Position numbers and translations under genes: made by a program. The notes under the pieces are model-generated. The model ran no database searches and was not told the DNA's origin. It was given only the letters and a program-made list of their open reading frames with translations. Of a DNA stretch of 21,518 nt, positions 426 through 21,518 are shown one piece after another (positions within the stretch are counted from its first letter, which is position 1; every line of letters begins with the position of its first letter). This stretch comes from Octopus sinensis (taxonomy: Eukaryota). Where the stretch lies: contig NW_021823857.1 in the NCBI RefSeq assembly GCF_006345805.1, positions 1-21,518 of the forward strand. Direction: 5' to 3'.

Positions 426-497
426 AATTGTTTTAAATTTGAAAGCCCCGTGAATGTACCTTCATTGATGGTTGCAATGTTGTTGTTGTCAAGACGT
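426..497 (-). CDS. LRR exon E1 (72 nt): (L)RLDNNNIATINEGTFTGLSNLKQL
   Basis: Minus strand reads tttactctttctttactgctatag|ACGTCTTGAC...AAACAATT|gtaagt. Open, phase 2-2, matches the typical LRR consensus. Confidence 0.93.
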
Positions 498-2782
498 CTA
501 TAGCAGTAAAGAAAGAGTAAAATAGATTATATGGAAAATATTTGTGATACAACATCAAACACTGTGACTTCAGAATGAAATGAAGAAAAGAAGAAAGATA
601 ACGAAGAAGAGGAAGAAGGAGAAGGAGAGTAGGAGAAGACGAAGAAGTAGAAGAAGAAGAAAGAAGAAGAAGAAGAAGAAGAAGAAGAGAAACGGAAGGA
701 GAATTAACGAGGAGGTGGAGGAGGTGGAGGGGATTGAGGGGCGGGGATGTTTGGAGGAGGACAAAGGAAGGGATGACTGAGGAGGGGGCCGCTGCGGGTA
801 GCAGCAGAAGGAGGAGGAAGAGCTGCAGACTGAGAATAAGAGGAAGAATTGGCAGAGAATGGAAAAGAGGGAGACCAGTGACGAAGCAGGAAGTACAGAG
901 AAGAAAAAGAAGAAAAAGAAGAAGAAAAAGAAGAAGAAGAAGATACAGAAGAAGAAGAAGAAGAAAAGGAAGGAGAATTGACGAGGAGGAGGAGGAGGCG
1001 GAGGGGATGGAGAGGCGGGGATGTTTGGAGGAGGACAAAGGAAGGGATGACTGAGGAGGGGGCCGCTGCGGGTAGCAGCAGAAGGAGCAGGAAGAGCAGG
1101 AGGATGAGAATAAGACGAAGAATTGGCAGAGAATGGAAAAGAGGGAGACAAGTGACGAAGCAGAAAGTACAGAGAAGAAAAAGAAGAAGAAAAAGAAGAA
1201 GAAGAAGAAGAAGAAGAAGCAGAAGAAGAAGATACAGAAGAAGAAGGAGAAGTGGAAGAAGAAGTGGAGAAGAAGACGAAGACGAAGAAGAAGAAGAAGA
1301 AGAAGAAGTAGTAGAAGAAGAAGAAGACGCAGAAGAAGAAGAAGATACAGAAGTAGCTGAAGAAGAAGAAGAAGAAGAAGAAGCAGAAGAAGAAGAGGAA
1401 GTAGAAGAAGAAAACGACGAAGAAGAGAGGAACATGAAGAAGATGAAATAGGAAAGAAGAAGAAGACGAACAAGAAGAAGAAGGAGAAGAAGAAGAAGAA
1501 GAAGAAGAAGGAGAAGAAGAAGAAGAAGAAGAGAAGAAGAAGAAGAGAAGTGGAGGAAGAGGAAGTAGATGAAGACGAAGAAGACGATACAGAAGAAGAA
1601 GGAGAAGTGGAGGAAGAAGTGGAGAAGAAGACGAGAGACGAAGATAGAATAAGAAGAAGAAGTAGTAGAAGAAGAAGAAACGCAGAAGAGAAGAGATACA
1701 GAAGTAGCTGAAGAAGAAGAAGAAGAGAAGCAGAAGAAGAAGAGGAAGTAGAAGAAGAAAACGACGAAGAAGAGAGGAACATGAAGAAGATGAAGTAGGA
1801 AAGAAGAAGAAGACGAACAAGAAGAAGAAGGAGAAGAAGAAGAAGAAGAAGAAGAAGGAGAAGAAGAAGAGAAGAAGAAGAAGAGAAGAGGAAGTGGAGG
1901 AAGAGGAAGTAGATGAAGACGAAGAAGACGATACAGAAGAAGAAGGGGGAGTAGAAGAAGAAGAAGAAGAAGTAGACGAGAAAAGGAAGAAGAGGAAGGA
2001 GGAAATAAGATTAAGAAGAAGAAGAAGACGACGAAGAAGAAAAAGAGGAACATGAAGGAGATGAAGTAGGAAAGAAGAAGAAGACGAAGAAGAGAAGAAG
2101 GAGAAGAAGAAAAACGAAGAAGAAGAAGGAGAAGAAAAAGACGAAGTGGAGGAAGAGGAAGTAGAAGAAGACGAAGAAGAAGAAGAAGAAGAAGAAGGGG
2201 GAGTAGAAGAAGAAGAAGAAGAGGAAGTAGTAGAAGACAAAGAAAAGGAAGAAGAAGGAGAAAAATAAGAGGAAGAAGAAGAAGACGACGAAGACGAAGA
2301 GGAACATGAAGAAGAAGAAGTTGGGAAGAAGAAGACGAAGAAGAGGAAGAAGAAGAAGAAGGAGAAGTAGGAGAAGAAGAAGAAGAAGTAGAAGAAGACG
2401 AAGAAGAAGAAGGGGAACTAGAAGAAGAAGAAGACAAAGAAAAGGAAGAAGAAGAAGAAGAAGAAGAAGAAGGAGAATAAGAAGAGGAAGAAGAAGAAGA
2501 CGAAGTAGAAGAAGAAGAAGACAAAGAAAAGGAAGAAGTAGAAGAAGGAGAAGTAGAGGAGGAAAGAGCAGAAGAAGATGACGAAGAAGAAGGGGAGCAT
2601 GAAGAAGATGAAGTAGGAAAGAAGAAGAAGACGAAGAAAAGAAGAAGAAGAAGAAGAAGAAGAAAGAAGAAGAAGAATAAGAAGAAGAAGTAGAAGAAGA
2701 AGAAGAAAGAGAAGAAGAAAAAGAAGAAGGAGAAGAAGAAGAAGATGGATAAGATGATGATGAAGAAGAAGAAGAAGGATGA

Positions 2783-2813
<31 letters not shown>

Positions 2814-5800
2814 ACGAAGAAGAAGACACATTGAAAATCATAGTGTTTAAGATGAAACTGAAAATATTTTCGAAATATCAGGAAATAATTCAAGGATAGA
2901 TCGATAAATCTTGGGCGAGAAACATGGCTGAAACATCAGGGAATATACGGAATCAGAAATCAACATATTCAAATGCACTCATACGCATTCTTATATTCAT
3001 AGTATCAACGACGGAATGCGGTATGCACACTCACATCACACATATTCCCACTCACCCTTGTGGAAATATGGTGAGAGAGATTATTTATTTCATATCGCTT
3101 CATTGTCACACAAGAATATTAGAAAACACACGCTTACAAGAATTATCACATTTTAATTGTATCAGCCAAATATTCCAGCTTACAAGTACAGTAAGTATTT
3201 CAGGTTTACAGATAGAATGTATGTGACGATATTATTCGAATATATATTTTCCGCTTCCACTTCAGTTGCTCTCTTACATAATAACGTGAAGTGAATGACA
3301 AAATTCGAAGTTGAATGATAATATCGAAACACGAAGGAGAATATTGAAATAAGAAATGGAGGAGGATGTAAAATATAAAATAAAGAAATAATATAGTCAC
3401 ATTTCACACAGAACTACACATATATATGAACATACACATATATTTCAGCTAAAAATATTTGATGCAAATATGTAAACTAACAAACATTACCATTTCTAAT
3501 ACAAATTCATATCAAAAACATTGAAATTTGGGGAACAAAAATGAGTTATTGAGATGCGAATTGAAACAAAGCAACTACAATAAAGGAACATTATATTTTT
3601 CCTATTATTTCACTTTCTCTCTCAATCTCTCTCTTTCTTTCACATTGTCTCGCTCTCTCCTATTCTCTTTGTATCTTCCTAAATCGTGTTCGATCCTCAA
3701 ATTTGAATTAATTTTGTTTCGTTCAGTCTGAAATTTTATACATTTGTGAGCTTATATATCAGCATCAATTATTACTTTCGGATAATAGTATCAAGAAACT
3801 GAACGAACTTACAATTCTTTTAATTTGAAAGCCCCCGTGAATGCTCCTTCTTTGATGGTTGTCTATGTTTTTGTTGTAACCAGATATCTATAGTAGCAGT
3901 AAGAAAAGAGTAAGTTAGATTATATGGAAAATATGATGTTTACGACATCAAACGCTGTACTTTCAGAATGAAAGGAAGAAAAAGAAGAAAGATAACGAAG
4001 AAGAAAAGGAAGAATAAGAAGGAGGAGGAGGAGGAGGCAAGAAGTGAAAAGAAGAAGAATAGTAGAAGAAGAAAGGAAAGAAGGAGAAAAAAAAGAAGGA
4101 AGAAGTAATAGGAGGACAAAAAAAAGGAGGAGGAGATGGTAAAAGGGAAGAAGTAGTAGCGGAAAAGTAAAAGAAGAAGAAGGAGGAGAGGAATGAGAGG
4201 ATGCAAGTAAATGAAGAAGTAGAAAGAAGAAGAAGAAGAAGAAGGAAGAGGAGAAAAAGGGGAGGAGGAGAATGATGGAGAATAAGTAGGAGAAGATGAA
4301 AAGAAGATGAATGAAGGATGAGGAGGATAAGAATAACAAAAAGAAGAATATAAGAATAAGAAAGAGGAGTAGGAGGAGAAGTAAATGTTGAAGTAGAAAG
4401 TTTGTAGAAGAAGAAGAAGAAGATTGAGAATAGTATAAGAAGAAAAATAGTAGAAAATGAGAAGAAAAAAGAAAAAGGAGAAGGAGAAAAGAACAAGAAG
4501 AAGAATTCGAGATAAGACTCAGAAGAAGAAGAAAAATATTCTGATAGAGGGGAGGAGGAGAATTACCAAAAAAAATGAGGAGAAGGCGTAGAGTATTGGG
4601 AAGAAAGAATAAGAGAAAAATAATTAAAGAGGAAGAGGAAAAGGAGGATGAATCAATAATGGAAATTAGTAGTAAAGAAAAAGAAAGAATAATAAGAAGG
4701 AGGGTAGGAAGGGAAAGGGAATAAGAGAGGAGTAGTTGAAAAAGTTGAAAGTAAAGAGTTGAATGTAGGATAAGAAGAAGAAATAAGTGATAAGCGATCG
4801 AAGAAGAAAAGAATAATAGAAGGAGAAGCGATAGAAGAAGAAAAGAATAAGAGACGAAGAAGGAGAAGAGAATAAGAAGAAGAAGAAGAAAATGAAAAAC
4901 GAGCAGGAAGAGGAGGGGAGGAGTAGAATTTACAAAGGAAAAATGGAGGAGGGGCGAGTGGAGGTAAGAAATTTAAAGAAGAAATGAAGAATAAGAAGAA
5001 GAAGAAATTAGAAGAGGAAGAGTAGGACGGAGTAGAAGAAGAAGAAAAAGAAAAGAAGAAAAAGAAGAAGAAGAAAAAGAAGAAGAAGAAGAAAAAGAGA
5101 AAGAAAAAGAAGGATGAGAAGGAGCACGGAGGAGAGGAAGAGAAGAAGAAAATAAGAAGAGGGAGGAGAAAAGAAGAAGAGCAGAAGATACATTGAAATT
5201 ATGGCGTTCAAGATGAAACTGAAAATGTTCTTAAATTCAGGAAATAATTCAAGGATATCGATAAATTTTGGGCGAGGAGACATGGCTGAAAAATCAGGGA
5301 ATATACGGAATCAGAAATCAACATATTCAAATGCACTCATACACATTCTCATATTCATAGTATCAACGACGGAATCCGGTATGCACACTCACATCACACA
5401 TATTCCCACTCACCCTTGTGGAAATATGGTGAGAGAGATTATTTATTTCATATCGCTTCATTGTCACAAGAATATTAGAAAAAACACGCTCACAAGAAAT
5501 ATATCAGCAGTTTAATTGTATCAGGCGAAATATTGCAGCTTACAAGTACAGTAAGTATTTCAGGTTTACAGATAGAATGTATGTGACTATATTATTCGAA
5601 TATATATTTTCCGCTTCCACTTCAGTTGCTCTCTTACATATATAACGTGAAGTGAATGACAAAATTCGAAGTTGAATGATAATATCGAAACACGAAGGAG
5701 AATATTGAAATAAGAAATGGAGGAGGATGTAAAATATAAAATAAAGGAATGATATAGTCACATTTCACACAGAACTACACTTATATATGAACATACACAT

Positions 5801-8800
5801 ATACTTCAGCTAAAAATATTTGATGCAAACATGTAAACTCACAAACGTTACCATTTCTAATACAAATTCATATCAAAATCATTGAAATTTGGGGAACAAA
5901 ACTGAGTTATTGAGATGCAAATTGAAACAAAGCAACTACAATAAAGGAACATTATATTTTTCCTATTATTTCACTTTCTCTCTCAAATTCTCTCTCTTTC
6001 TTTCACATTGTCTCGCTCTCTCCTATTCTCTTTGTATCTTCCTAAATCGTGTTCGATCCTCAAATTTGAATTAATTTTGTTTCGTTCAGTCTGAAATTTT
6101 ATACATTTGTGAGCTTATATATCAGCATCAATTATTACTTTCGGATAATAGTATCAAGAAACTGAACGAACTTACAATTCTTTTAAATTTGAAAGCCCCA
6201 TGAATGCTCCTTCTTTGATGGTTGCTATGTTGTTGTAACCAAGATATCTATAGCAGTAAAGAAAGAGTAAATTAGATTATATGGAAAATATATGTGTTAC
6301 GACATCAAACGCTGTGACTTCAGAATGAAAGGAAGAAAAAGAAGAAAGATAACGAAGAAGAAAAGGAAGAATAAGAAGGAGGAGGAGGAGGAGGCGAAGA
6401 AGTAGAAAAAGAAGAAGAAGAATTAGTAGAAGAAGAAAGGAGAAGAAGGAGAAGAAAAAGAAGGGGAAGAAGTAATAGGAGGAAAAAGGAGGAGGAGGAT
6501 GGTAAAAGGGAAGAAGTAGTAGCGGAAAAAGTAAAAGAAGAAGAAGGAGGAGGAGAAGGAGGAGGATGACAAGTAAATGAAGAAGTAGAAAGAAGAAGAA
6601 GAAGAAGGAAGAGGAGGAAAAAGGAGGAGGAGGAGAATGATGGGGAAGAATAAGTAGGAGAAGATGAAAAGAAAGATATGAGAGAGGAGGGATGAGAATA
6701 ACCAAAAGAAGAATATAAAAGAAGAAAGAGGAGTAGGAGGAGAAAGTAAATTTTGAAGTAGAAAGTTGTAGAAGAAGAAGAAGAAGAAGGAGTAGAAGTA
6801 TAAGAAGAAAAAAGAGTAGAAAAATGAGAAGAAGAAAAGAAAAAGGAGAAGGAGGAAAAGAAGAAGAAAAAGATGCGGGAGAGGAGGGGGAGGAGGAGAA
6901 TTACAAGAAAAAAGGAGGAGGAAGGGCGGAGAGGATTGGGAAGAAAGAAAGGAGAGGAAAAAAGAAGTAGAAGAGGAAGAGGAAAAAGGAGGAGGAAGCA
7001 ATGAATTGGAAAAGTAGGAGTAGAAGAAAAAGAAGAAGAATAAGAGAAGGAGGAGGAGGATGAGAGGTTTAAAAGTTAAAGTAAAGAGGATGTAGGAGAA
7101 AGAATAGAAGAAATAAGTAGAAGCGATAGAAGAAGAAAAGAATAAGGAGAAGGAGAAGCGATAGAAAAAGAAGAATAAGAAGACGAAGAAGGATAAGAAG
7201 AAGAAGAAGAAGAAGAAATGAAAACGAGCAGGTAGATGAGGGAGTAGGAGAATTACAAGAGGAAATATGAGGAGGAGGCGCGGAGTGGAGGGGAAGAGAA
7301 TTTAAAGAAGAAAATGAATAATAGAAGAATAAGAAATTAGAAGAGAAGAATGTAGTAAGGAGTAGAATAAGAAGAAAAGAAATGAGAGAAAGAAGAGAGA
7401 AGAAGAAGAGAAAAGAAGAAAAAGAAGAGAAGAAAAAGAAGAAGGAAGAAGGAGCGCAGGAGGAGAGGAAGAAGAGAAGAAGAAGAAGAATAAGAAGTAG
7501 AAAAAAGAAGGAGAGATGGGAAGGAATAAGAAGTAGAGAAGAAGATTAGAAGAAGAAGAGAAGAAGATTAGGAGAAAAAGAAGAAGATAAGACGAAGAAG
7601 ATACATTGAAATTATGGCGTTCAGGTGAAACTGAAAATGTTCTTAAATATCAGAAATAATTCAAGGAGAGATCGATAAATTTTGGGCGAGAGACATGGCT
7701 GAAAAATCAGGAATATACGGAATCAGAAATCAACATATTCAAACGTACTCATTCGCATTCTTATATTCATAGTATCAACGACGGAATCCGGTATGCACAC
7801 TCACATCACACATATTCCCACTCACCCTTGGGTAAATAATGTGAGAGAGATTATTTATTTCATATCGCTTCATTGTCACAAGAATATTAGAAAACACACG
7901 CTTACAAGAAATATATCAGCAGTTTAATTGTATCAGGCCAAATATTGCAGCTTACAAGTACAGTAAGTATTTCAGGTTTACAGAAAGAATGTATGTGACT
8001 ATATTATTCGAATATATATTTTCCGCTTCCACTTCAGTTGCTCTATTACATAAATAACGTGAAGTGAATGACAAAATTCGAATTTGAATGATAATATCGA
8101 AACACGAAGGAGAATATTGAAATAAGAAATGGAGGAGGATGTAAAATATAAAATAAAGGAATAATATAGTCACATTTCACACAGAACTACACTTATATAT
8201 GAACATACACATATACTTCAGCTAAAAATATTTGATGCAAACATGTAAACTCACAAACGTTACCATTTCTAATACAAATTCATATCAAAATCATTGAAAT
8301 TTGGGGAACAAAATGAGTTATTGAGATGCGAATTGAAACAAAGCAACTACAATAAAGGAACATTATATTTTTCCTATTATTTCACTTTCTCTCTCAAATT
8401 CTCTCTCTTTCTTTCACATTGTCTCGCTCTCTCCTATTCTCTTTGTATCTTCCTAAATCTTGTTCATTCTACAAATTCGAATTGATTTTGTTTGGTTCAG
8501 TCTGAAATATTATACATTTGTGAGCTTATATATCAGCATCAATTATTACTTTCGGAAAATAGTATCAAGAAACTGAACGAACTTACAATCCCTTTAAATT
8601 TGAAAGCCCCGTGAATGTACCTTCTGTGATGGTTGCAATGTTGTGCTCGTACACATATCTATAGCAGTAAAGAAAGAGTAAAATAGATTATATGGAAAAT
8701 ATTTGTGATACAACATCAAACACTGTGACTTGAGAATGAAAGGAAGAAAAAGAAGAAAGATAACGAAGAAGAAAAGGAAGAAGAAGAAGGAAGAGGAGGA

Positions 8801-11800
8801 GGCGAAGAAGAATTAAAAGAAGAAAGGAGAAGAGGTAGAAGAAAAAGAAGAGCAAGAAGGAATAGGAGGATAAAGGAGGAGGAGGCTGATAAAAGGGAAG
8901 AAGATGTAGGAGAAACAGTAAAAGAAGGAGAAGGAGGGGGAGGAGGAGCAGGAAGAGAATAACAAGAAGAAGAAGATAAGAATAAGAAAGACGAGGAAGA
9001 AGTGGAGGAGAAGTAGATGAAGAAGTAGAAAGAAGAAAGGAGAAGAAGAAGAAGGAGAAGAAGAAGGAGAAGAAGAAGAAGAAGAAGAAGACGAAAAAGA
9101 AGGAGGATGAGGAGGGGGAGGGGAAGAAGAAGAATTGCAAGAAGAAGGAAGGGAAGAACAAGAAGAAGACGTAGAAGAATTTGAAGCAGGAAAAAGAAGA
9201 AGAAGATGAAGAAGAAGGAGGAGGAGGAGGAGGAGGAGAAGGAGAAAGAGAATAACAAAAACAGAAGTTAAGAAGGAGAAGGAGGAGGAGGAGAAGATGT
9301 AGAAGAAGAAGAAGAAGAAGAAGAAGGAAGAGGAGGAAAAAGGAGGAGGAGTAGGAGTATGAAGGGGGAGAATAAGTAGGAGAAGATGAAAAAGAAGAAG
9401 AAGATGAAGGAGGAGGAGGAGGAGGAGGAGAGGAGGAAAATAACAAAAAGAAGAATATAAGAAGAAGAAAGAGGGGTAGGAGGAGAAGTAGATAAAGAAG
9501 TAGAAAGAAGAAGAAGAATATAAGAAGAAAAAAAAGAAATAGAAGAATGAGAAGAAGAAAAGAAAAAGAAGGAGGAGGAGGAAAAGAAGAAGAAGAATTA
9601 GAAGAAGAAGAAGAAGAAGAAGAAGAAGAAGACGGAGAAGAAAAAGAAAAAAAAAGAAAAAGGAGCAGGAGAGGAGGGGGAGGAAGAGAATTACAAGAAG
9701 AAATAGGAGGAGAAGCGGAGTGGAGGGGGAAGAGAATTTAAAGAAGAAAATGAAGAATAATAATAAGAAAAAAATTAGAAGAGGAAGGAGGAGGAGGACC
9801 AGGAGGAGGAGGAGGACCAGGAGGAGGAGGAGAACCAGGAGGAGGAGGAGGACCAGGAGGAGGAGGAGGACCAGGAGGAGGAGGAGAAGGAGGTGAAATA
9901 GAAGAAAAAGAAAAGAAGAGAAGAAGAAGAGAAGTAGATGAAGTAGAAGTGGAAGAAAGAAAAGAAAAGAAGAAGAAGAAGAAGAAGAAGAAGAAGAGAA
10001 GGAGGAGGAGGCAGAAGACGAAATGACAAAAAGATGATGAAAAAGGCAGAGAAGGAGAAGTAGAATAAGAAAAAGAACAAAAAGAAGAAGAAGGAGAAGA
10101 AGAAGAAGAAGAAGAAGAAGAAGAAAAGAAAGAAGAAGAAGAGAAGAAGAGGAAGAGAAGAAGACGAAGAAGATACATTGAAAATTATGGCGTTCAAGAT
10201 GAAACTGAAAATGTTCTTAAATATCAGGAAATAATTCAAGATAGATCGATAAATTTTGGGCGAGGAGACACATGGCTGAAAAATCAGGGATATACGGAAT
10301 CAGAAATCACATATATTCAAATGCACTCATACACATTCTTATATTCATAGTATCAACGACGGAATGCGGTATGCACACTCACATCACACATATTCCCACT
10401 CACCCTTGGGAAATATGGTGAGAGAGATTATTTATTTCATATCGCTTCATTGTCCACAAGATATTAGAAAAAACAACGCTTACAAGAAATATATCAGCAG
10501 TTAATTGTATCAGGCCAAATATTCCAGCTTACAAGTACAGTAAGTATTTCAGGTTTACAGATAGAATGTATGTGACTATATTATTCGAATATATATTTTC
10601 TGCTTCCACTTCAGTTGCTCTCTTACATAAATAACGTGAAGTGAATGACAAATTCGAAGTTGAATGATAATATCGAAACACGAAGAGAATATTGAAATAG
10701 AAATGGAGGAGGATGTAAAATATAAAATAAAGAATGATATAGTCCACATTTCACACAGAACTACACTTATATATGAACATACACATATACTTCAGCTAAA
10801 AATATTTGATGCAAACATGTAACTAACAAACGTTACATTTCTAATACAAATTCATATCAAAATCATTGAAATTTGGGGAACAAAAATGAGTTATTTAGAT
10901 GCGAAGTGAATCAAAGCAACTACAATAAAGGAACATTATATTTTTCCTATTATTTCACTTTCTCCCTCAAATTCTCTCTCTTTCTTTCACATTGTCTCGC
11001 TCTCTCATATTCTCTTTGTATCTTCCTAAATCGTGTTCGATCCTCAAATTTGAATTAATTTTGTTTCGTTCAGTCTGAAATTTTATACATTTGTGAGCTT
11101 ATATATCAGCATCAATTATTACTTTCGGAAAATAGTATCAAGAAACTGAACGAACTTACAATTCTTTTAAATTCGAAAGCCCCGTAAATGCACCTTCATT
11201 GATGCTTGAAATGCTGTTGCCCGAAAGAGCTCTGTGGTAGTAAAGAAAGAGTAAAATAGATTATATGGAAAATATTTGTGATACGACATCAAACGCTGTG
11301 ACTTCAGAATGAAAGGAAGAAAAGGCAGAAAGATAACGAAGAAGAAAAGGAAGAAGAAGAAGGAGGAGGAGGAGGAGGCGAAGAAGCAGAAAAAGAAGAA
11401 GAAGAATTAGTAGAAGAAGAAAGGAGAAGAAGGAGAAGAAATAGAAAGGGAAGAAGTAATAGGAGGAAAAAGGAGGAGGAGGATGGTAAAAGGGAAGAAG
11501 TAGTAGCGGAAAAAGTTAAAGAAGAAGAAGGAGGAGGAGAAGGAGGAGGACGACAAGTAAATGAAGAAGTAGAAAGAAGAAGAAGAAGAAGAAGAAGGAA
11601 GAGGAGGAAAAAGGAGGAGGAGGAGAATGACGGGGAAGAATAAGTAGGAGAAGATGAAAAAGAAGATGATGATGAAGGAGGAGGAGGATGAGAATAACAA
11701 AAAGAAGAATATAAGAAGAAGAAAGAGGAGTAGGAGGAGAAGTAAATGTTGAAGTAGAAAGTTGTAGAAGAAGAAGAAGAAGAAGGAGAAGAAGTATAAG

Positions 11801-12501
11801 AAGAAAAAAAGAGTAGAAAAATGAGAAGAAGAAAAGAAAAAGGAGAAGGAGGAAAAGAAGAAGAAGAAGATTTAGAAGAAGACGCAGAAGAAGTAGAAAA
11901 AGATGCGGGAGAGGAGGGGGAGGAGGAGAATTACAAGAAAAAAAGGAGGAGGAGGGGCGGAGAGGATCGGGAAGAATGAAAGAAGAGGAAAAATGAAGTA
12001 GAATGGGAAGAGGAAAAAGGAGGAGGAAGCAATGAAGTGGAAAAGTAGGAGTATAAGAAAAAGAAGAAGAATAAGAAGAAGGAGGAGGAGGAGGAGGAGT
12101 AGTTGAAAAAGTTGAAAGTAGAAGAGGATGTAGGAGAAGAAGAAGAAGAAATAAGTAGAAGCGATAGAAGAAGAAAAAGAATAAGGAGAAGGAGAAGAAG
12201 AAGAAGAAGAAGACGAAGAAGGAGAAGAAGAAGAAGAAGAAGAAAATGAAAAACGAGCAGGAGAGGAGGGGAGGAGGAGAATTACAAGAGGAAAAATGAG
12301 GAGGAGGGGCGGAGTGGAGGGGGAAGAGAATTTAAAGAAGAAAATGAAGAATAAGAAGAAGAAAGAAATTAGAAGAGGAAGGAGTAGGAGGAGTAGAAGA
12401 AGAAGAAAAAGAAAAGAAGAGAAGAAGAAGAAGAAGAAGAAGGAAAAGAAGAAAAAGAAGAGAAGAAAAAGAAGGAGGAGAAGGAGCAGCAGGAGGAGAG
12501 G

Positions 12502-12533
<32 letters not shown>

Positions 12534-15500
12534 GAGGAAAAGAAGGAGGAGGAGAAGAAGAAGTAGAAGAAGAAGAAGAAGAAGAAGAAGCGGGAGGAGA
12601 AGAAGAAGAAGAAGACGAAGAAGATACATTGAAAATTATGGCGTTCAAGATGAAACTGAAAATGTTCTTAAATATCATAAATAATTCAAGATAGATCGAT
12701 AAATTTTGGGCGAGGAGACATGGCTGAAAAATCAGGGAATATACGGAATCAGAAATCACATATTCAATGCACTCATACACATTCTCATATTCATAGTATC
12801 AACGACGGAATGCGGTATGCACACTCACATCACACATATTCCCACTCACCCTTGTGGACATATGGTGAAGAGATTTTTATTTCATATCGCTTCATTGTCA
12901 CAAGAATATTAGAAAACAACACGCTTACAAGAAATATATCAGCATTTAATTGTTCAGGCGAAATATTCCAGCTTACAAGTACAGTAAGTATTTCAGGTTT
13001 ACAGAAAGAATGTATGTGACTATATTATTCGAATATATATTTTCCTTTCCGCTTCCACTTCAGTTTGCTCTCTTACATAAATAACGTGAAGTGAATGACA
13101 AAATTCGAAGTTGATGATAATATCGAAACACGAAGGAGAATATTGAAATAAGAAATGGAGGAGGATGTAAAATATAAAATAAAGGAATGATATAGTCACA
13201 TTTCACACAGAACTACACTTATATTGAACATACACATATACTTCAGCTAAAATATTTGATGCAAACATGTAAACTCACAAACGTTACCATTTCTAATACA
13301 AATTCATATCAAATCATTGAAATTTGGGAACAAAACTGAGTTATTGAGATGCGAATTGAAACAAAGCAACTACAATAAAGGAACATTATATTTTTCCTAT
13401 TATTTCACTTTCTCTCTCAAATTCTCTCTCTTTCTTTCACATTGTCTCGCTCTCTCCTATTCTCTTTGTATCTTCCTAAATCGTGTTCGATCCTCAAATT
13501 TGAATTAATTTTGTTTCGTTCAGTCTGAAATTTTATACATTTGTGAGCTTATATATCAGCATCAATTATTACTTTCGGATAATAGTATCAAGAAACTGAA
13601 CGAACTTACAATTCTTTTAAATTTGAAAGCCCCGTGAATGCTCCTTCTTTGATGGTTGCTATGTTGTTGTAACCAAGATATCTATAGCAGTAAAGAAAGA
13701 GTAAATTAGATTATATGGAAAATATATGTGTTACGACATCAAACGCTGTGACTTCAGAATGAAAGGAAGAAAAAGAAGAAAGATAACGAAGAAGAAAAGG
13801 AAGAATAAGAAGGAGGAGGAGGAGGAGGCGAAGAAGTAGAAAAAGAAGAAGAAGAATTAGTAGAAGAAGAAAGGAGAAGAAGGAGAAGAAAAAGAAGGGA
13901 AGAAGTAATAGGAGGAAAAAGGAGGAGGAGGATGGTAAAAGGGAAGAAGTAGTAGCGGAAAAAGTAAAAGAAGAAGAAGGAGGAGGAGGAGGATGACAAG
14001 TAAATGAAGAAGTAGAAAGAAGAAGAAGAAGAAGAAGGAAGAGGAGGAAAAGGAGGAGGAGGAGAATGATGGGGAAGAATAAGTAGAGAAGATGAAAAAG
14101 AAGAAATGATGAGAATAACAAAAGAAGAAATATAAGAAGAGAAGAGAGGAGGTAGGAGGAAAGTAAATGTTGAAGTAGAAAGTAGTAGAAGAAGAGAAGA
14201 AGAAGAAGAGAAGAAGTAATAATAGAAAAAAAGAGTAGAAAAATGAGAATAAGAAAAGAAAAAGGAGAAGGAGGAAAAGAAACAAGAAGAAGATTTTAAG
14301 AAGACGCAGAATAAGAAGAAAAGATGCGGGAGAGGATGGGGAGAGATAATTACAATAAAAAAGGATGAGGAAGTGCGGAGGATTGGAAGAAAGAAGAAGA
14401 GGAAAAAAGAAGTAGAAGAGGAAGAGGAAAAAGGAGGAGGAAGCAATGAAGTGGAAAAGTAGGAGTAGAAGAAAAAGAAGAAGAATAAGAAGAAGGAGGA
14501 GGAGGAGGAGGAGTAGTTGAAAAAGTTGAAAGTAGAAGAGGATGTAGGAGAAGAAGAAGAAGAAATAAGTAGAAGCGATAGAAGAAGAAAAAGAATAAGG
14601 AGAAGGAGAAGCGATAGAAGAAGAAAAGAAGAAGAAGAAGACGAAGAAGGAGAAGAGAAGAAGAAGAAGAAGAAGTAGAAGAAAATGAAAAACGAGCAGG
14701 AAGAGGAGGGAGAGGAGAATTACAAGAGAAAAATGATGAGAGGGCGGAGTGGAGGGGGAAGAGAATTTAAAGAAGAAAATGAGAATAATAAGAAGAAAGA
14801 ATTAGAAGGGGAGAGGAGCATGAGAGTAGAAGAAGAAGAAAAGAAATGAAGAGAAGAAGAAGAAGAAGAAGAAGGAAAAGAAGAAAAAGAAGAGAAGAAA
14901 AAGAAGGAGGAGAAGGAGCAGCAGGAGGAGAGGAAGAAGAAGAAGAAGAACAAGAGGTAGAAGAAGAAGTAGAGGAAGAAGAAGGAGGAGAAGAAGTAGT
15001 AGAAGAAGAAGAAGAAGAAGATGGAGGAGAAGAAGAAGAAGAAGACGAAGAAGATACATTGAAAATTATGGCGTTCAAGGTGAAACTGAAAATGTTCTTA
15101 AAATATCAGGAAATAATTCAAGGAGAGATCGATAAATTTTGGGCGAGGAGACATGGCTGAAAAATCAGGGAATATACGGAATCAGAAATCAACATATTCA
15201 AACGCACTCATTCGCATTCTTATATTCATAGTATCAACGACGGAATGCGGTATGCACACTCACATCACACATATTCCCACTCACCCATGTGGACATATGG
15301 TGAGAGAGATTATTTATTTCATATCGCTTCATTGTCACAAGAATATTAGAAAACACACGCTTACAAGAAATATATCAGCAGTTTAATTGTATCAGGCCAA
15401 ATATCCCAGCTTACAAGTACAGTAAGTATTTCAGGTTTACAGATAGAATGTATGTGACTATATTTTTTGAATATATATTTTCCGCTTCCACTTCAGTTGC

Positions 15501-18500
15501 TCTATTACATAAATAACGTGAAGTGAATGATAAAATTTGAAATTGTTTGATAATATCGAAACACGAAGGAGAATATTGAAATAAGAAATGGAGGAAGATG
15601 CAAAAAATAAAATAAAGGAATAATAGTCACATATCACACAGAACTACACTTATATATGAACATACACATATACTTCAGCTAAAAATATTTGATGCAAACA
15701 TGTAAACTCACACACGTTACCATTTCTAATACAAATTCATATCAAAATCATTGAAATTTGTGGAACAAAAATGAGTTATTGAGATGCAAATTGAAACAAA
15801 GCAACTACAATAAAGGAACATTATATTTTTCCTATTATTTCACTTTCTCCCTCAAATTCTCTCTCTTTCTTTCACATTGTCTCGCTCTCTCATATTCTCT
15901 TTGTATATTCCTAAATCGTGTTCATTCTACAAATTTGAATTGATTTTGTTTAGTTCAGTGTGAAATATTATACAATTGTGAGCTTATATATCAGCATCAA
16001 TTATTACTTTCGGAAAATAGTCTCAAGAAACTGAACGAACTTAAAATTCTTTTAAATTTGAAAGCCCCGTAAATGCACCTTCTGTGATGGTTGCAATGTT
16101 GTTCTCGTTCAGATATCTATAGCAGTAAAGAAAGAGTAAAATAGATTATATGGAAAACATTTGTGATACAACATCAAACACTGTGACTTGAGAATGAGGA
16201 AGAAAAAAGAAGAAAGATAACGAAGAAGAAAGGAAGAAAGATAGAGCGAAGTAGAGTGAGGCGAAGAAGAATTAGAAGAAGAAAGGAGAAGAGGTAGAAG
16301 AAAAAGAAGAGCAGAAGGAATAGAGGAAAAAGGAGGAGAGGCTGATAAAGGGAGAGAGATGTAGGAGAAAAAGTAAAAGAAGGAGACGGAGGGGTGAGGG
16401 AGGAGAGGAGAGGAATAGAATAACAAGAAGAAGAATATAACGAATAAGAAAGACGAGGAAGAGTAGAGGAGAAGTACATGAGAAGTAGAAAAAGAAAGAG
16501 AAGAAGAAGGTGAATGAAGAAGTAGAAGAAGATGAAGAAGATGACGAAAAATAAGGAGGATGAGTGAGGGGGTAGTGAATAAGAAGAATTGCAAGAAGAA
16601 GGAAGGAAGAACAGGAAAGAAGACGAGAGTTGAAGCATGGAAAAGAAGAAAAAATGAAGAAGAAGGAAGGAGATAAAGATAGAGAATACAAAAACAGTAG
16701 TTAAGAAAGAAGAGGTGAGGAAGGATTGTAGAAGAAGAAGAAGAAGAATGAAGAGGAATAAGAAGAAGATAGAAGAAGAAAATCAGAAATAACGATAACT
16801 AAGAAAAAAGAAGACAGAAGAAGAAGAGAACCGAAGGAGAAGAAAATAAGGCAGGAGGATAAGAATATCTTAACGTGGCAGCCGTTTCATGTTATTTCCT
16901 ACTTCTTGCACAACCTCGAGTATCCGCATCGCCTCTCTATGTACCACCACACACATCCACACACATACACGCACATGTATGCACATAAAGCACATACACA
17001 CATATCACTCAGAATATACACACATATGTCTACTACCTCTGGGTGCGAGTATGTGTGTGAACCTCGTCCCCGTAGTGGTGTCCTTTTATCTGTCGATACA
17101 GTTTATTATCGAATCTAAGGTGTTGTCTTCTAGTTCCCGGCGTGTGTCTTTGGAAATGCGTTTTGAAGCGTTCGTCCATCCGTCCGCTATGTTTTTTCTA
17201 CCCAGTGTTTTGATTGCTCCCAGGCCCAAGTGTGATGTATTTGTAGAAGATTAGTCAAATCTTTTAAGTATAGTACGTTCTGGGACAGTGGGTGGAATGT
17301 GTTTGATGAATCCATATCGTCTCGGGTATAGCTGGGCATTAATGGGCACAACGGTTTGAGGAGTATATCTCAAGATGGCTCATTTGTTGTGTTGGGGCTC
17401 AAGGTCCATCAACTGTTGGTCTCAATTTGATGTCAGTAGGTCTTTAGTATTTTTTATATGCTGATCCTTGCATTTTGGAGCATTCGCAGATCTTGGGTGA
17501 TCCATCCATAAAATTACTCTCTTTCATTACAGAGCTGCATAAATAATCGTTCTCTCTTTATCTGTGAACGACGAACGTTGGTATTCATTTATCTTATTTT
17601 GGGTGTATTCATTATTACATTTTCTCCGCGTGTCTTGGTTCTTCCTTGTAGCAGGATTAGTCTGTTTTCCAATATTTTATCTTTATAGTAGTCTTGGGTC
17701 CGTGACTGCTATCGCCCTTCCCAATCGGTTTCGTTTAGGATGATTAAATTGTCAATTTGCAGTTTGTAAGGCTTTCTTTTCGTCTTCACGAAGGTTCTGT
17801 TTGCATTTTCGCATTTTCGATTATTTTATTATAATAGATATAAACAGATTTAAGTCACACGTAAAGTATGAATGGAAAACACACATGCATGTAAAATATG
17901 AGAAAAGAATGGATGTTCAAATATTGTGATTTGAATTAGATTTACAAAGCCTTCGTTGCAACATCAGTTTTCAGTGGAAGATATTTTTTATCATCTCATA
18001 AGTCAGCTTTATTTATAAATATCTTGTTTCTGTCCAATGAGCATTCTATTTGTTATTACACTTTGCTGTCAAAAGTAATTTATCTTTGCAAAAGTAAACT
18101 CCTTTCCTTTGCATAATTGATGCATAAAAGTTCTTTACAAAAATAAATAAACCCCCAAAACCTCAAGACTGAAATAATAGACTAGGAAGGAAAACATAAC
18201 AGAAATGGAAAGGGATTTATTAATAGAACTGGTGATGGTAGAGTGGGGAAACCCTGATATAATTTTGAGTTATGTACTACAAAGGAGAACAACCTTACAT
18301 GGTGATTTAACTGGCTAAGGGTGTTATTTAAAAAAGGGATGTGACAACATACATTGCCTTAGTTTTTTAGTCTTTGTTTAGCCCTTTGCTCCTTACTCTT
18401 GCTGTATTAAACCTCAGTTTGTTCCCATTATTAACTACCTATGCTAAATCCTTCATCTCCTGAAGAGTATCCCTGTTCATCATTTCTGTAAAGGTTGACC

Positions 18501-20363
18501 TGCAACAGCTCAAGCGGAATATTAATGATATCTGTCTCACAAGTATTGGAGATCTTGCAGGGGTTAAAAAACTTGTCTGATCCTTTCTCCAAAATCGGTA
18601 AAATAAAAAGTGTGGGATTTTAACTCATATCACAACACCGGACAATATACTGCAAGGTGTCTTATTCGAGGTCCTCATAGTTGCATTTGTTCATTGAACT
18701 GTTATGGTTCTTTATTGATCTCGGAAATGAATGACCCAAGGTTGACCTTGCGGGATTTGACGTCAGATTGCCGTGTGTCAGAACGCAATGTATTCTACTA
18801 GACGGTCAAATGATTTGTGCCTACCTCGCTCAAGTTATGAACGATGAAAATATCTAACTTATTAAACAGAACTTCAACTTTACTATTCAACATCTTGAGT
18901 TATACGAGATTTAGGGATTCCATTATTGACACTTTCTCTTTATTTTACATTAGGATTTCTCATTTTGTCAAAACGTTCCAAATGTTTTGAGAAATAGATC
19001 TGATCGAATGAATTGATCCACTTTAGTATTAGAATATTTGATTAAACTGAAAGTTTAAGGATTAAATGCAATGATGCAAGCCAATTAACTGGAAAAATCA
19101 CCTGGAAGAGCAATGTGTTGCAACAGAGTATTTGTTATGATTGCATGTATCAAAATAATTTTCTCTTTTTATTCTATCCATTTCTTGAGACGTTAAATTT
19201 TAATAATTTACTTAAAATTGCGTAAGATTTCAGGTGAACGGGGATACATCAATCAGCCGAAACTTCAATTAAGCTTGCATAATTTTGTAATAAGGTTTAT
19301 TGTGTTCATGATAGGGTAAATTTTACTGATGACATTCTATCAAAAATAAATTCCTCATAATTTGTTAAAATAACACTATTTTTTGATTTCTTCACTTAGG
19401 TATTTTAAGAATTTGGCAATTTAAGCGGATCTCGTCATTATCTGCTGTTTAATTCATCTGTTTCATTTTTAATTATAAAAATAATAATTTCTTCTATAGG
19501 AACAAACCTGAAATTTTGGGAAAGGGACAAGTCCTTTACATTGATCTCAGAGATAAATTGCTGTTTATTTACCGACTCCAAAAGAATGAAAAGCAAAGTC
19601 AACCTCGACAGAATTTAAATCGAAACGTAAAGACGAACGATAACCGCTCAACATTTTGTCTGCGTGCACAACGATTCTGATAGCTCGCTGCATATTCTAT
19701 TATAAAATTAACACAAACAATAATTAACATTATTCTGTGACACGGACGATCAACTGATATTATATCATATTACTGTAACAATAAGTAACAATTCAACTAA
19801 TTATGATATAATATCTAACTGTTGGAATACACGTTTTCTTAGCACTAAAGTTTTTATACTGTCCGTTCATTGAATATACCGTAAAGATTGATAAGTTCAG
19901 ACAAATGAAATCAAAGTCAGATACTAGTCATAGCCAATCTCTGTGTATGCGATGTTATATATTATAAATTCAATATGGTAAGTAACAGTTTATTTGACTT
20001 CACAGCAGGTAACATATCGATTTGTTTTACTCTAACATAAGATTGTGCTTAAAGCTGTGAGATAAACAGCATAAGCGATTAGCTGAGAACATAATCAATG
20101 AGAATTTAAAATATTGGATGTGGAAAATACGTAGAAAGTGGTCAAATACTTACAAATATTCACATTCGTCGGAATTGTTTGGGAAATCGATGGTAAATTG
20201 CGATGTTCACAATCTATATTTGTTGTAAGTGAATTGCAAGTACATATCTTGCATATATCTGAATCAGCTTGAGTCTCCAAAAACAATATCGTACACAGTA
20301 TCAACGCAAGAGACCGTCTATATGATACTACGTGTGAACATATTGCCAGGCGTGATTTATTAT
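426..20363 (-). CDS. Multi-exon secreted/membrane LRR protein gene, 5' portion (signal peptide + LRRNT + at least 7 single-LRR exons; continues beyond the left edge)
   Basis: Hand-assembled from one LRRNT exon and seven LRR exons, all on the minus strand with AG/GT boundaries except where noted. One 72-nt phase-2 exon per LRR is the established architecture of extracellular LRR genes such as LGR/RXFP and Slit. Linking the LRRNT exon to the array is inference. Confidence 0.8.
565..2824 (+). repeat. Purine-rich (GAA/GGA)n spacer S1, longest, with nested internal duplications
   Basis: Direct inspection; overwhelmingly A/G on the plus strand. Confidence 0.95.
3813..3887 (-). pseudogene. LRR exon E2, frameshifted as written (75 nt; underlying YLGYNNIATIKEGAFTGLSNLKEL type)
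   Basis: AG/GT intact. Several small indels versus E6 give A TAT CTG GTT ACA ACA AAA ACA TAG (stop). Could be assembly error or true decay. Confidence 0.7.
3965..5186 (+). repeat. Purine-rich spacer S2
   Basis: GAA/GGA-rich; shares landmarks (atggtaaaaggg, aagtaaatg, gcgat, aaaaacgagcagg) with S3, S5 and S6. Confidence 0.95.
6176..6247 (-). CDS. LRR exon E3 (72 nt): (L)YLGYNNIATIKEGAFMGLSNLKEL
   Basis: ctatag|ATATCTTGGTTAC...AAAGAATT|gtaagt; open, phase 2-2. Confidence 0.93.
6325..7599 (+). repeat. Purine-rich spacer S3
   Basis: Same landmarks as S2, S5 and S6. Confidence 0.95.
8587..8658 (-). CDS. LRR exon E4 (72 nt): (L)YVYEHNIATITEGTFTGLSNLKGL
   Basis: ctatag|ATATGTGTACGAG...AAGGGATT|gtaagt; open, phase 2-2. 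The ladder Asn is replaced by His. Confidence 0.88.
8735..10171 (+). repeat. Purine-rich spacer S4, containing an 18-nt (GGA)5CCA-like minisatellite at ~9787-9886
   Basis: Left half shares gctgataaa, gatgtagg and aaaaacag(a/t)agttaag with S7. Confidence 0.95.
11160..11231 (-). CDS. LRR exon E5 (72 nt): (L)ALSGNSISSINEGAFTGLSNLKEL
   Basis: ctaccacag|AGCTCTTTCGGGC...AAAGAATT|gtaagt; open, phase 2-2. Most divergent exon. Confidence 0.93.
11305..12622 (+). repeat. Purine-rich spacer S5
   Basis: Same landmarks as S2, S3 and S6. Confidence 0.95.
13610..13681 (-). CDS. LRR exon E6 (72 nt): (L)YLGYNNIATIKEGAFTGLSNLKEL
   Basis: ctatag|ATATCTTGGTTAC...AAAGAATT|gtaagt; open, phase 2-2. One nt different from E3. 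Confidence 0.93.
13760..15052 (+). repeat. Purine-rich spacer S6
   Basis: Same landmarks as S2, S3 and S5. Confidence 0.95.
16045..16116 (-). CDS. LRR exon E7 (72 nt): (L)YLNENNIATITEGAFTGLSNLKEL; donor mutated GT>TT
   Basis: Acceptor and frame are intact. The plus strand has cttaaaatt where other copies have cttacaat(t/c), so the minus-strand donor reads ttaagt. Confidence 0.75.
16190..16865 (+). repeat. Degenerate, truncated spacer S7 marking the array edge
   Basis: S4-like but more interrupted; ends abruptly in unique sequence. Confidence 0.9.
16940..17030 (+). repeat. Degenerate (CA)n/(TA)n microsatellite
   Basis: cacacacatccacacacatacacgcacatgtatgcac... Confidence 0.7.
17035..17815 (-). 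mobile_element. Decayed Penelope-like retroelement RT fragment
   Basis: Minus-strand pieces, frameshifted: QNLREDEKKALQ (17761-17799), KLRPTVDGP*APTQQMSHL, DILLKPLCPLMPSYTRDDMD, FDNKLYRQIKG (17081-17113). They match Penelope-type RT motifs (NLTxEExxAL, LRPIVS, YxQxxG) recalled from memory. Confidence 0.75.
18330..18600 (-). mobile_element. Possible decayed Ty3/Gypsy RT fragment
   Basis: Minus-strand frame FWRKDQTSFLTP...RSTFTEMMNRDTLQEMKDLA* resembles the Gypsy KTAFxTP...PxTFQRxMN motif. Heavily degenerate. Confidence 0.4.
19471..19692 (-). mobile_element. Degenerate tRNA-derived SINE resembling an abundant Octopus repeat
   Basis: Minus strand starts gcagcgagctatcagaatcgtt (A-box-like) and contains gatttaaattct (B-box-like). 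It has an ATT-rich tail. The body (gaatgaaaagcaaagtcaacctcgacagaattt) was recognised from memory, not by search. Confidence 0.65.
20154..20363 (-). CDS. Signal peptide + LRR N-terminal cap exon (210 nt): ...RRSLALILCTILFLETQADSDICKICTCNSLTTNIDCEHRNLPSISQTIPTNVNI
   Basis: ttttcttcttttacag acceptor, gtaagt donor, open frame. Hydrophobic stretch ending in TQA, followed by a CxxCxC...C...L....IP LRRNT pattern. Confidence 0.85.
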
Positions 20364-20705
20364 CTGTAAAAGAAGAAAATAGGAAATGTCAGAGATTTCA
20401 ATGTTATTAACTTCAAATTGCAGATTCTCTGAAGGAACTAAAATTCACTCCCTGTTCCACATGACAAATATATTTTTGTTTTCATGATTGGATATTTAAA
20501 GCTAAAAATTAAATTTCGATAAATTAGTGTGAAGAAATTTATAAAAATATTATAGCTTTAACCGTAATAATATCAAAGAAAACACCAAACTCCACACACA
20601 AACACAAACGCACTCCTACACACATCTGTAACCATACTCGGAGGGGGGTCTAATATATATATATACAAAACTAGCGAACCATGATTTTCGTAGACCCTAA
20701 ATACG

Positions 20706-21491
20706 CAGTGGTTGTAAACCCGGTTGGGTCGTTAAATCCGATGGGACCCACAAGCAACTGTATTGTATCAAAGGATTTTTCCTGTACCCCAGTTTTTAGA
20801 AGCGTTCATACAAAGTTTTTCCTTAAATAAACTATCATGATTTCATTTTACTTACTTTTTTTTTTACTGAACAAGAATAAAGCATGAACGTAAATCATAT
20901 ATATAAACTCAACTTGTGTGTCTATCTGTGTATCCTGTGTGTGTGTCTGTGTCTTTTACTTTCCCGGCACATCTCCCTCCTATCCAACAAATCGTAGAAC
21001 CACCAACATGGTCACTTAAAGTTTAGGCGAATGAAATTGAACTGCGCTATTTCTGTTCCGAAATTCATCTCGAAGTGCAAAATCGATAATGTGTTTGTTT
21101 AGGCCTTCTCCCATGCATTGAATAGTGAACTTTACTCAGTCAGGCTGTTGACGTGAACTGTGTTCACCACGCGTGCAAGCATGCGTAATTGCATGAAAAA
21201 TAAACAAATCAAGATATAAAAACGAATCGCCGTAAACATTGTAGAAATTCGGCAAAGAAATGATTTTTCGGGTGTAGCCTGGAGGGTTTTTTTCGTATTA
21301 ATCGTTGGACTTTGTGAACCATACAATTTTTTCATAACATTTTTAACGCTTTGAATTAAATATGACCATTTTGCGTTGAGTCTGCAGTTTGAATCACTAA
21401 CCAAATTTTAGCAGGTTGGATTTTTGATCATCACGATACATCGCCAGCGACTCCCTGAACTCTCCTCTGATATCCTCGTTGAGAAATACTG
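20706..21491. mobile_element. Possible hAT-type non-autonomous element or remnants
   Basis: cagtggttgtaaac at 20706 and gttgagaaatactg at 21478-21491 form an imperfect inverted pair (10/14) resembling hAT CAGTGxTTCTCAAC ends. No clean 8-bp TSD. Confidence 0.3.
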
Positions 21492-21518
21492 ATCTAAAAG
21501 AATAATTCAACAATGCAT

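Follow-up and report, generated by a model that had tools for sequence, protein, structure and literature searches.

How a gene comes to be built from near-copies of a single small exon, and whether such an array serves to vary a receptor, is the question raised by a stretch of Octopus sinensis DNA – contig NW_021823857.1 of RefSeq assembly GCF_006345805.1, positions 1 to 21,518, the whole 21,518 nt of which we call the window. On the plus strand it has the look of a satellite, with purine-rich (GAA)n-like stretches of ~1.3 kb alternating with unique stretches of ~1.1 kb; on the minus strand it holds seven tandem units of ~2.4 kb, each with a single exon coding for one leucine-rich repeat (LRR). 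An initial annotation had proposed a modular locus of symmetric LRR cassettes, able to vary in number and surface through unequal crossover, conversion or combinatorial splicing, and the modular structure is borne out here. We consider it likely that the window covers the 5′ portion of a gene belonging to a young multigene family of the octopus lineage, in which LRR cassettes have been diversified in the germline at the predicted binding surface. Germline modular diversification is well supported, and combinatorial diversity within the animal is only hinted at.

Seven single-LRR exons and their paralogues

A repeat search places the seven units in the same direction, with start-to-start spacings of 3387, 2363, 2411, 2573, 2450 and 2435 nt, and each combines an exon with unique intron sequence (~1 kb) and a (CTT)n tract of 1.3 kb. 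All seven cassettes lie downstream of a first exon, in one orientation and within a single transcription unit, as follows.

20154..20363, minus strand: exon 1, with a short leader, an ATG (20339-20341), a signal peptide and an LRRNT (CKICTCNSLTTNIDC...); 2 nt and 1 nt shorter than in paralogues
16117..20153, minus strand: intron 1, 4037 nt, homologous throughout to intron 1 of the O. sinensis paralogues, with fragments resembling a short interspersed element (SINE) inside
16045..16116, minus strand: LRR exon U1, YLNENNIATITEGAFTGLSNLKE; acceptor intact, donor TT and not GT
13610..13681, minus strand: LRR exon U2, YLGYNNIATIKEGAFTGLSNLKE; AG/GT intact
11160..11231, minus strand: LRR exon U3, ALSGNSISSINEGAFTGLSNLKE; acceptor ccacAG, donor GT
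8587..8658, minus strand: LRR exon U4, YVYEHNIATITEGTFTGLSNLKG; AG/GT intact
6176..6247, minus strand: LRR exon U5, YLGYNNIATIKEGAFMGLSNLKE; 1 nt different from U2
3813..3887, minus strand: LRR exon copy U6, similar in type to U2 and U5; assembled length 75 nt, five indels, in-frame stop, splice sites intact
426..497, minus strand: LRR exon U7, RLDNNNIATINEGTFTGLSNLKQ; AG/GT intact

Six of the seven LRR exon copies are exactly 72 nt long, U6 being the exception with its 75 nt as assembled. The exons supply one base at the start and two at the end of the codons that span their borders (TT + A, for Leu), are therefore of phase 2-2, and translate as a 24-residue LRR such as (L)YLNENNIATITEGAFTGLSNLKE(L). 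An AG acceptor stands before all seven – ctatAG throughout, except for ccacAG at U3 – and a GT donor (GTAAGT) follows six of them, with TT in its place at U1. The repeats match LxxLxLxxNxL with a 24-residue period, and the joined conceptual product of the exons matches Pfam LRR_8 over five stretches (E=4e-74). The initial annotation had counted seven units with a phase 2-2 LRR exon each and at least five distinct LRR variants; both counts hold, with the reservations just given for U1 and U6, and the six readable copies in fact give six peptides, those of U2 and U5 being one residue apart. At its left edge the window ends inside the array, short of the 3′ end of the gene.

The best protein matches of the window are O. 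sinensis Gnomon models named 'slit homolog 1-like' or 'LRRC4-like', which begin MFHHVVSYRRSLVLILCTILFLETQADSDICKICTCNSL...; the window reads ..SHVVSYRRSLALILCTILFLETQADSDICKICTCNSL.. at the corresponding place. The window is an unannotated paralogue of these genes. It has the exon 1, the intron 1 and the A-type exon-plus-intron units (described below) that are common to the family, and over ~5 kb of promoter, exon 1 and intron 1 its mismatch-only divergence from three paralogous loci of assembly GCA_006345805.1 – L001, L002 and L003 – is 4.8-5.1%, equal to that of L001 from L002. Paralogous arrays of the kind that the initial annotation had recommended searching for are thus present in the genome. 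L001 and L003 are 98.9% identical over 13.3 kb, with differences that are mostly gaps, and for this reason are probably haplotigs. In both L001 (17751 nt) and L002 (19750 nt) the gene model breaks off at an LRR exon, within ~1 kb of a contig end, which indicates that LRR arrays break the assembly.

A complete member of the family, XP_036355612.1 (P0140, 409 aa), has a signal peptide, an LRRNT, 24-residue LRRs, an LRRCT (CGCHLPAFVKYIKK...) and a Cys-rich domain of ~100 residues. In tblastn the exon 1 peptide of the window is 78% identical to it over 68 aa, and exon 1 shows a hydrophobic leader and a CxxCxC...C pattern; in a paralogue the Pfam LRRNT match has E=0.0054, short of the family cut-off. 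The initial annotation had placed the array 4 kb downstream of a signal peptide/LRRNT exon, and this is where it lies, with the reservation that exon 1 is frameshifted as assembled. Locus L003, which is complete, contains 12 LRR exons of two alternating types, A (NNI[AS]TIKEGxFTGLSNLK, acceptor ctatag) and B (NKISRIEKEMFQGLHNLEK, acceptor cttcag), and has its LRRCT and tail exons at 38982-46050. The units of the window are all of the A type, and tblastn with P0140 detected no B-type LRR exon, LRRCT or Cys-rich tail within it. LRR exon number varies among paralogues.

Relatives are present in O. vulgaris and O. bimaculoides, and no squid or cuttlefish proteins are found among the close matches. 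The family also has a distant member in O. vulgaris, locus L004 (OX597843.1), which contains two LRR exons and did not match the window in megablast. In an AlphaFold model the LRR part forms a solenoid, with a predicted local distance difference test score (pLDDT) mostly of 80-98, and the closest solved folds are those of the Nogo receptor, LRRTM2, hagfish variable lymphocyte receptor (VLR) and LGR4/5. For the C-terminal Cys-rich domain an assignment to Ly6/uPAR was considered but could not be upheld: it has no Pfam match and a pLDDT of 25-60, and the NCBI name of a relative of the domain, P0102 ('Ly6/PLAUR domain-containing'), is the sole, unconfirmed hint.

Divergence of exons and introns

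Within the window the exons vary more than the introns that separate them, with 25 of 72 sites variable among the six readable exons against 117 of 1108 in the flanking introns (Fisher p=1.6e-7). In a comparison of 14 A-type units drawn from three loci, nearly all pairs are 3-8% divergent over the 400 nt past the exon, irrespective of locus, and the first 45 nt of the exon are 9-33% divergent, U2/U5 being the one identical pair; the last 27 nt are near-identical among LRR exons. At exon codons 1, 3, 4 and 23 the proportion of nonsynonymous differences (pN) is 0.50-0.55, near saturation, and in the remaining 19 codons pN is 0.04-0.08 and the proportion of synonymous differences (pS) 0.09-0.22.

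These four codons correspond to LRR positions 5, 7, 8 and 3 in L1xxL4xL6xxN9xL11. Entropy computed over 18 A-type and 8 B-type repeats is 1.9-3.0 bits at positions 3, 5, 7 and 8 and at most 1.7 bits elsewhere, and B-type exons show almost no variation outside the contact codons. In solved structures the same positions are solvent-facing on the concave beta-sheet – the usual ligand-binding face – and they are the hypervariable set of VLRs and plant LRR receptors. Set against a neutral background of ~5%, near-saturated contact positions point to diversifying selection on a predicted binding surface, and the variable surface suggested in the initial annotation can be located on the predicted ligand-binding face, at those four positions.

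An ordinary constitutive LRR gene, in which the array is a neutral by-product of tandem duplication and the differences between exons are meaningless, would have some things in its favour. Octopus genomes are repeat-rich. Single-LRR exons of 72 nt in phase 2 are moreover described as classical, and standard, in gonadotropin-receptor and SLIT genes in passages of two papers (PMC6642158, PMC11378527, where Koo et al. 1991 and Little et al. 2002 are cited). We nevertheless find such a gene improbable here: drift would be unable to bring replacements close to saturation at four codons of each repeat and yet leave the other 19, like the flanking introns, no more than 4-8% divergent, and the four-codon pattern is present in two exon types and at three loci.

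Comparison of whole units shows that the nearest neighbour of a unit shifts along its length. The first 250-500 nt past U2, U5 and U6 are 0-0.4% different, next to adjoining segments that differ by 3-5%, and exons U2 and U5 are one base apart despite a separation of three units. Inactivated exons occur both in the window (U1) and in L002, where the first exon contains a stop and its acceptor reads AA. Exon death is also assigned to L003, in which the first A-type exon (11131-11203) is 73 nt long. The patches of identity are the marks expected of unequal crossover and conversion, with germline birth and death of exons, and would be the footprints of the two exchange processes that the initial annotation had invoked.

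A germline history of this kind would run as follows. The LRR run was built here by tandem duplication of a 2.4 kb block, and the blocks keep swapping sequence; repeated positive selection would have reshaped the ligand-binding surface, and germline birth and death of exons would alter the number of LRRs, in proteins that are presumably secreted or possibly membrane-linked.

The state of the assembled copy

Germline diversification has to be weighed against several points. The pN and pS values come from a manual Nei-Gojobori calculation on exons of 23 codons, with neither tree nor site model. In the non-contact codons of A-type exons pS is ~0.2, several-fold above the ~0.05 of the introns (B-type pS is ~0.09), and selection on amino acids alone is therefore no full explanation; candidate explanations are that introns are homogenised while exons stay apart, or that exon segments are imported from diverged copies. 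The protein collection holds no transcript or protein of the window locus, the best match having 75% identity. The isoforms predicted for paralogues are automatic Gnomon models in a repeat array, some of them with hybrid exons joined at an internal GAAG|GT. Finally, as assembled, exon 1 is frameshifted, the donor of U1 is dead and U6 carries a stop.

The last of these defects are what would be seen if the window copy were a decaying pseudogene, a dead and untranslated duplicate of a family gene, and the missing product would agree with this. In DNA alignment with exon 1 of L001 and L002, exon 1 of the window lacks 2 nt directly past ATGTT and 1 nt near its 3′ end, so that the ATG is out of the signal-peptide frame and runs into a stop 7 codons on, and the phase at the exon end is 1 and not 2. 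The GT to TT change at the U1 donor is a substitution and not an indel – the only substitution among the listed defects – and the first exon of L002 is dead as well. We regard a pseudogene as possible but doubtful, on account of the kind of lesion involved and its surroundings.

All three bases missing from exon 1 are single-base homopolymer contractions. Over ~5 kb (window 16448-21517), alignments of the window with L001, L002 and L003 contain 111-121 gap openings, whereas L001 and L002 are separated by only 22 at equal mismatch divergence; the gaps against the window are mostly of 1 nt, and those mostly in homopolymers. Small indels near exon 1 are thus about five times as numerous as between two O. 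sinensis paralogues at equal substitution divergence, and at this local level of assembly noise three single-base contractions in exon 1 are to be expected. The lesions of U6 are of a similar kind: with ~450 nt of upstream sequence it differs from U5 by 38 gap positions and 8 substitutions, and the next 200 nt downstream are identical. This dense indel patch (~3810-4300), which spans U6 and the sequence upstream and ends sharply at the donor, looks like a consensus-quality artefact. Differences specific to single units comprise 19 deletions of 1 nt against 5 insertions of 1 nt.

The indel pattern suggests patchy long-read consensus error in a poorly polished assembly, and with small-indel noise this heavy the frameshifts of the window are uninformative and no proof of a pseudogene. 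Five exons, moreover, keep their frame and splice sites, and in non-contact codons pN is 0.08 against a pS of 0.22. After this comparison of indels the pseudogene was given less weight.

Cassette splicing and known systems

Each LRR exon of the window is preceded by a tract of 0.7-2.3 kb, (CTT)n-like and ~90% pyrimidine on the transcript, with 65-343 UCUU motifs; the tracts end 50-70 nt before the LRR acceptors.

16184..16863, minus strand: pyrimidine tract before U1, (CTT)n-like, ending 66 nt before the acceptor
13745..15074, minus strand: pyrimidine tract before U2, 1.3 kb, ~90% pyrimidine, 144 UCUU motifs
11290..12649, minus strand: pyrimidine-rich tract before U3
8710..10209, minus strand: pyrimidine-rich tract before U4
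6307..7606, minus strand: pyrimidine-rich tract before U5
3956..5205, minus strand: pyrimidine-rich tract before U6
563..2842, minus strand: pyrimidine tract before U7, the longest at 2.3 kb and nearly twice the length of the others, 343 UCUU motifs

Such kb-long UCUU-rich tracts could plausibly act as PTB-type splicing silencers and, as (GAA)n DNA, be prone to triplex formation and recombination. Because all cassettes are symmetric, any of them could be skipped in the mRNA without a frameshift, and NCBI models of paralogues predict isoforms of this sort. The NCBI gene on L003 (XP_036355612-623) has 13 Gnomon isoforms of 409/385/361/337 aa, distinguished by which whole cassettes they include from the first half of the array, and a second gene (XP_036355774-777) has four predicted isoforms of 160 aa, each lacking a different one of four exons. 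As models, these whole-cassette isoforms fit cassette skipping. Isoforms P0061, P0133 and P0142 contain hybrid LRRs formed at the GAAG|GT junction, for example YLSENNISTIKEG|AFTGLSHLKEL, and, given the 73-nt length of the first A-type exon of L003, such hybrid-exon models are probably an annotation work-around for an assembly indel. L003 also has two LRR exons (28668-28739 and 31667-31738) with frame and splice sites intact, located past the last LRR exon in use and before the LRRCT exon; none of the 13 NCBI isoforms includes them, and they may be a silent reserve or alternative exons missed by annotation.

From these elements – symmetric cassettes with hypervariable contact positions, predicted isoforms of two paralogues that differ by whole cassettes, two intact L003 exons in no model, a long UCUU-rich tract before every exon, and a recombination-prone repeat structure with conversion patches – a generator of diversity within the individual could be assembled, in which regulated cassette splicing or somatic recombination or conversion would yield many receptor variants for immunity or self-recognition. 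We judge this unlikely. The isoforms are only predicted, and short reads are unable to phase the junctions of exons whose last 27 nt are near-identical. The paralogue models hold 5-8 cassettes at once, so that the predicted splicing is not mutually exclusive, and the 7-12 cassettes of a locus amount to modest diversity beside Dscam or VLRs. No docking/selector complementarity was found: an inverted-repeat search (seed 11, at least 16 nt), which shorter or imperfect pairings may escape, gave no intron 1 pairing with every unit, only a 17-nt hairpin per unit. Of the combinatorial splicing proposed in the initial annotation there stand the 13 predicted whole-cassette isoforms, which, as Gnomon models only and some of them hybrid, are weak evidence. 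We would likewise give little credence to a combined form, in which hypervariable cassettes are both turned over in the germline and combinatorially spliced, with the UCUU tract gating inclusion, in an octopus-specific family of secreted or lipid-anchored LRR proteins.

The hairpin consists of two perfectly matching 17-nt inverted arms separated by 149 nt, located in the conserved intron part of each unit (7993-8009 / 8159-8175; in other units at 5581/5747, 10570, 13014 and 15452), and may be a remnant of the type left by a miniature inverted-repeat transposable element or an intronic hairpin. The fragments of intron 1 at ~19560-19700 and 18700-18830 (minus strand) resemble what we take to be the abundant tRNA-derived SINE of octopus genomes, with no ARAGORN or Rfam match to either; known RNA families and tRNA genes were not detected anywhere in the window by Rfam and ARAGORN, and the open reading frames in window 16800-21518 are uninformative.

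The closest precedent for the germline-diversified array is found in brown algae. In Ectocarpus and Saccharina, genes for ROCO LRR-GTPases have 72-nt, phase-2 exons coding for 24-residue LRRs, duplicated or shuffled in tandem; their arrays contain copies of exons that have been inactivated, residues of the concave face are under positive selection, and several splice variants carry differing LRR combinations (PMC3341825, PMC11378527). The ROCO genes have been proposed as variable recognition receptors and a possible basis of variable recognition in immunity (Zambounis et al. 2012, PMC3341825; Teng et al. 2024, PMC11378527). The octopus locus likewise has one 72-nt phase-2 exon per LRR in tandem and an excess of replacements on the concave face. 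However, ROCO proteins are intracellular stramenopile LRR-ROC-COR GTPases, whereas in the octopus protein a signal peptide is combined with LRRNT and LRRCT caps and a Cys-rich tail; Pfam gave no ROC or COR match, and the complete paralogues end in the LRRCT and Cys-rich domain. The octopus introns, with kb-long (CTT)n tracts, are also unlike those of ROCO genes. As an extracellular, capped LRR protein lacking ROC-COR, the octopus product would therefore belong to a system that works like that of the ROCO genes and is no member of that family.

Vertebrate genes offer older parallels. In gonadotropin/LGR receptors, SLIT1-3 and NLRP3, an in-phase exon carries one LRR or a fixed number of them, so that skipping or duplicating it keeps the reading frame; gonadotropin receptors have phase 2 introns throughout, like the octopus exons, and LGR4/5 ectodomains are among the nearest folds. 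Work on human families has shown that alternative splicing of LRR domains presupposes their exonic modularity (Hoss et al. 2019, PMC6642158; PMC11378527). These vertebrate arrays are old, however, with diverged introns, fixed exon number and conserved sequence, whereas the octopus units are ~95% identical outside the contact codons and vary in exon number, and no 7TM (seven-transmembrane) or EGF part is known in the family.

The initial annotation had drawn its parallels with VLRs and with arthropod Dscam, and in mechanism neither parallel stands. VLRs of lamprey and hagfish share with the octopus protein a signal peptide, an LRRNT, a variable number of 24-residue LRRs and an LRRCT, as well as hypervariable concave positions. 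The germline VLR gene is incomplete, and is completed somatically by copying of flanking cassettes that have no splice sites, with a cytidine deaminase involved. That defining feature is absent from the octopus locus, where each cassette is an ordinary exon bearing splice sites, all of them share one orientation and one transcription unit, and none is a donor cassette of the VLR type. Dscam1 resembles the octopus locus in its tandem arrays of similar exons within one gene and in its potential isoform diversity, and its clusters undergo mutually exclusive splicing guided by docking/selector RNA pairing; it encodes Ig domains and not LRRs, and in the octopus, apart from the negative search for such pairing, the paralogue models include up to 8 cassettes together.

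In LPA, a kb-scale exon-plus-intron unit (kringle IV-2) is tandemly repeated within the gene, its copies being near-identical and varying in number; the octopus locus has the tandem exon-plus-intron unit in common with it, but LPA varies in number and not in sequence. In conopeptide and snake-venom phospholipase A2 (PLA2) genes, exons diverge several-fold faster than introns between gene copies. Fast exons are common to these genes and the octopus locus, although venom diversity lies between gene copies and not among the exons of one gene.

A relation to the octopus expansion of adhesion G-protein-coupled receptors (GPCRs) is possible, resting on NCBI names and one sub-threshold domain match: P0085, a relative of the C-terminal part of the family, carries the NCBI name 'adhesion GPCR G6-like' and a sub-threshold HRM match (E=0.021). 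No GPS or 7TM domain occurs in any family protein retrieved. Group 3 of the octopus-specific adhesion GPCRs is octopus-restricted, clustered and under positive selection, and LRRs are present in 5/22 of its members (Ritschard et al. 2019, PMC6408891).

The open-access papers searched contain no prior description of an octopus LRR cassette family, which is apparently undescribed, though the kind of system is already known. Known octopus expansions are those of protocadherins, zinc fingers and GPCRs, and to our knowledge no diversified recognition receptors have been described for cephalopods. A 2026 review of immune diversification has FREPs as its sole mollusc entry (PMC13428168). Arrays such as this one break assemblies and mislead annotation, through hybrid exons and names such as 'slit homolog', and the family is for that reason probably under-counted. 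Should the improbable combined form, with germline turnover and combinatorial splicing together, prove to be true, recognition surfaces would be specific to the individual or the cell, for example in hemocytes, suckers, skin or nerve cords, and the family would be a protostome counterpart, via splicing, of lamprey VLRs. On the germline reading that we prefer, the locus is a clean natural case of exons outpacing introns several-fold within one gene, and a young family whose cassettes differ almost only at contact positions is a candidate for fast-evolving recognition, be it of pathogens, symbionts, prey chemistry or self.

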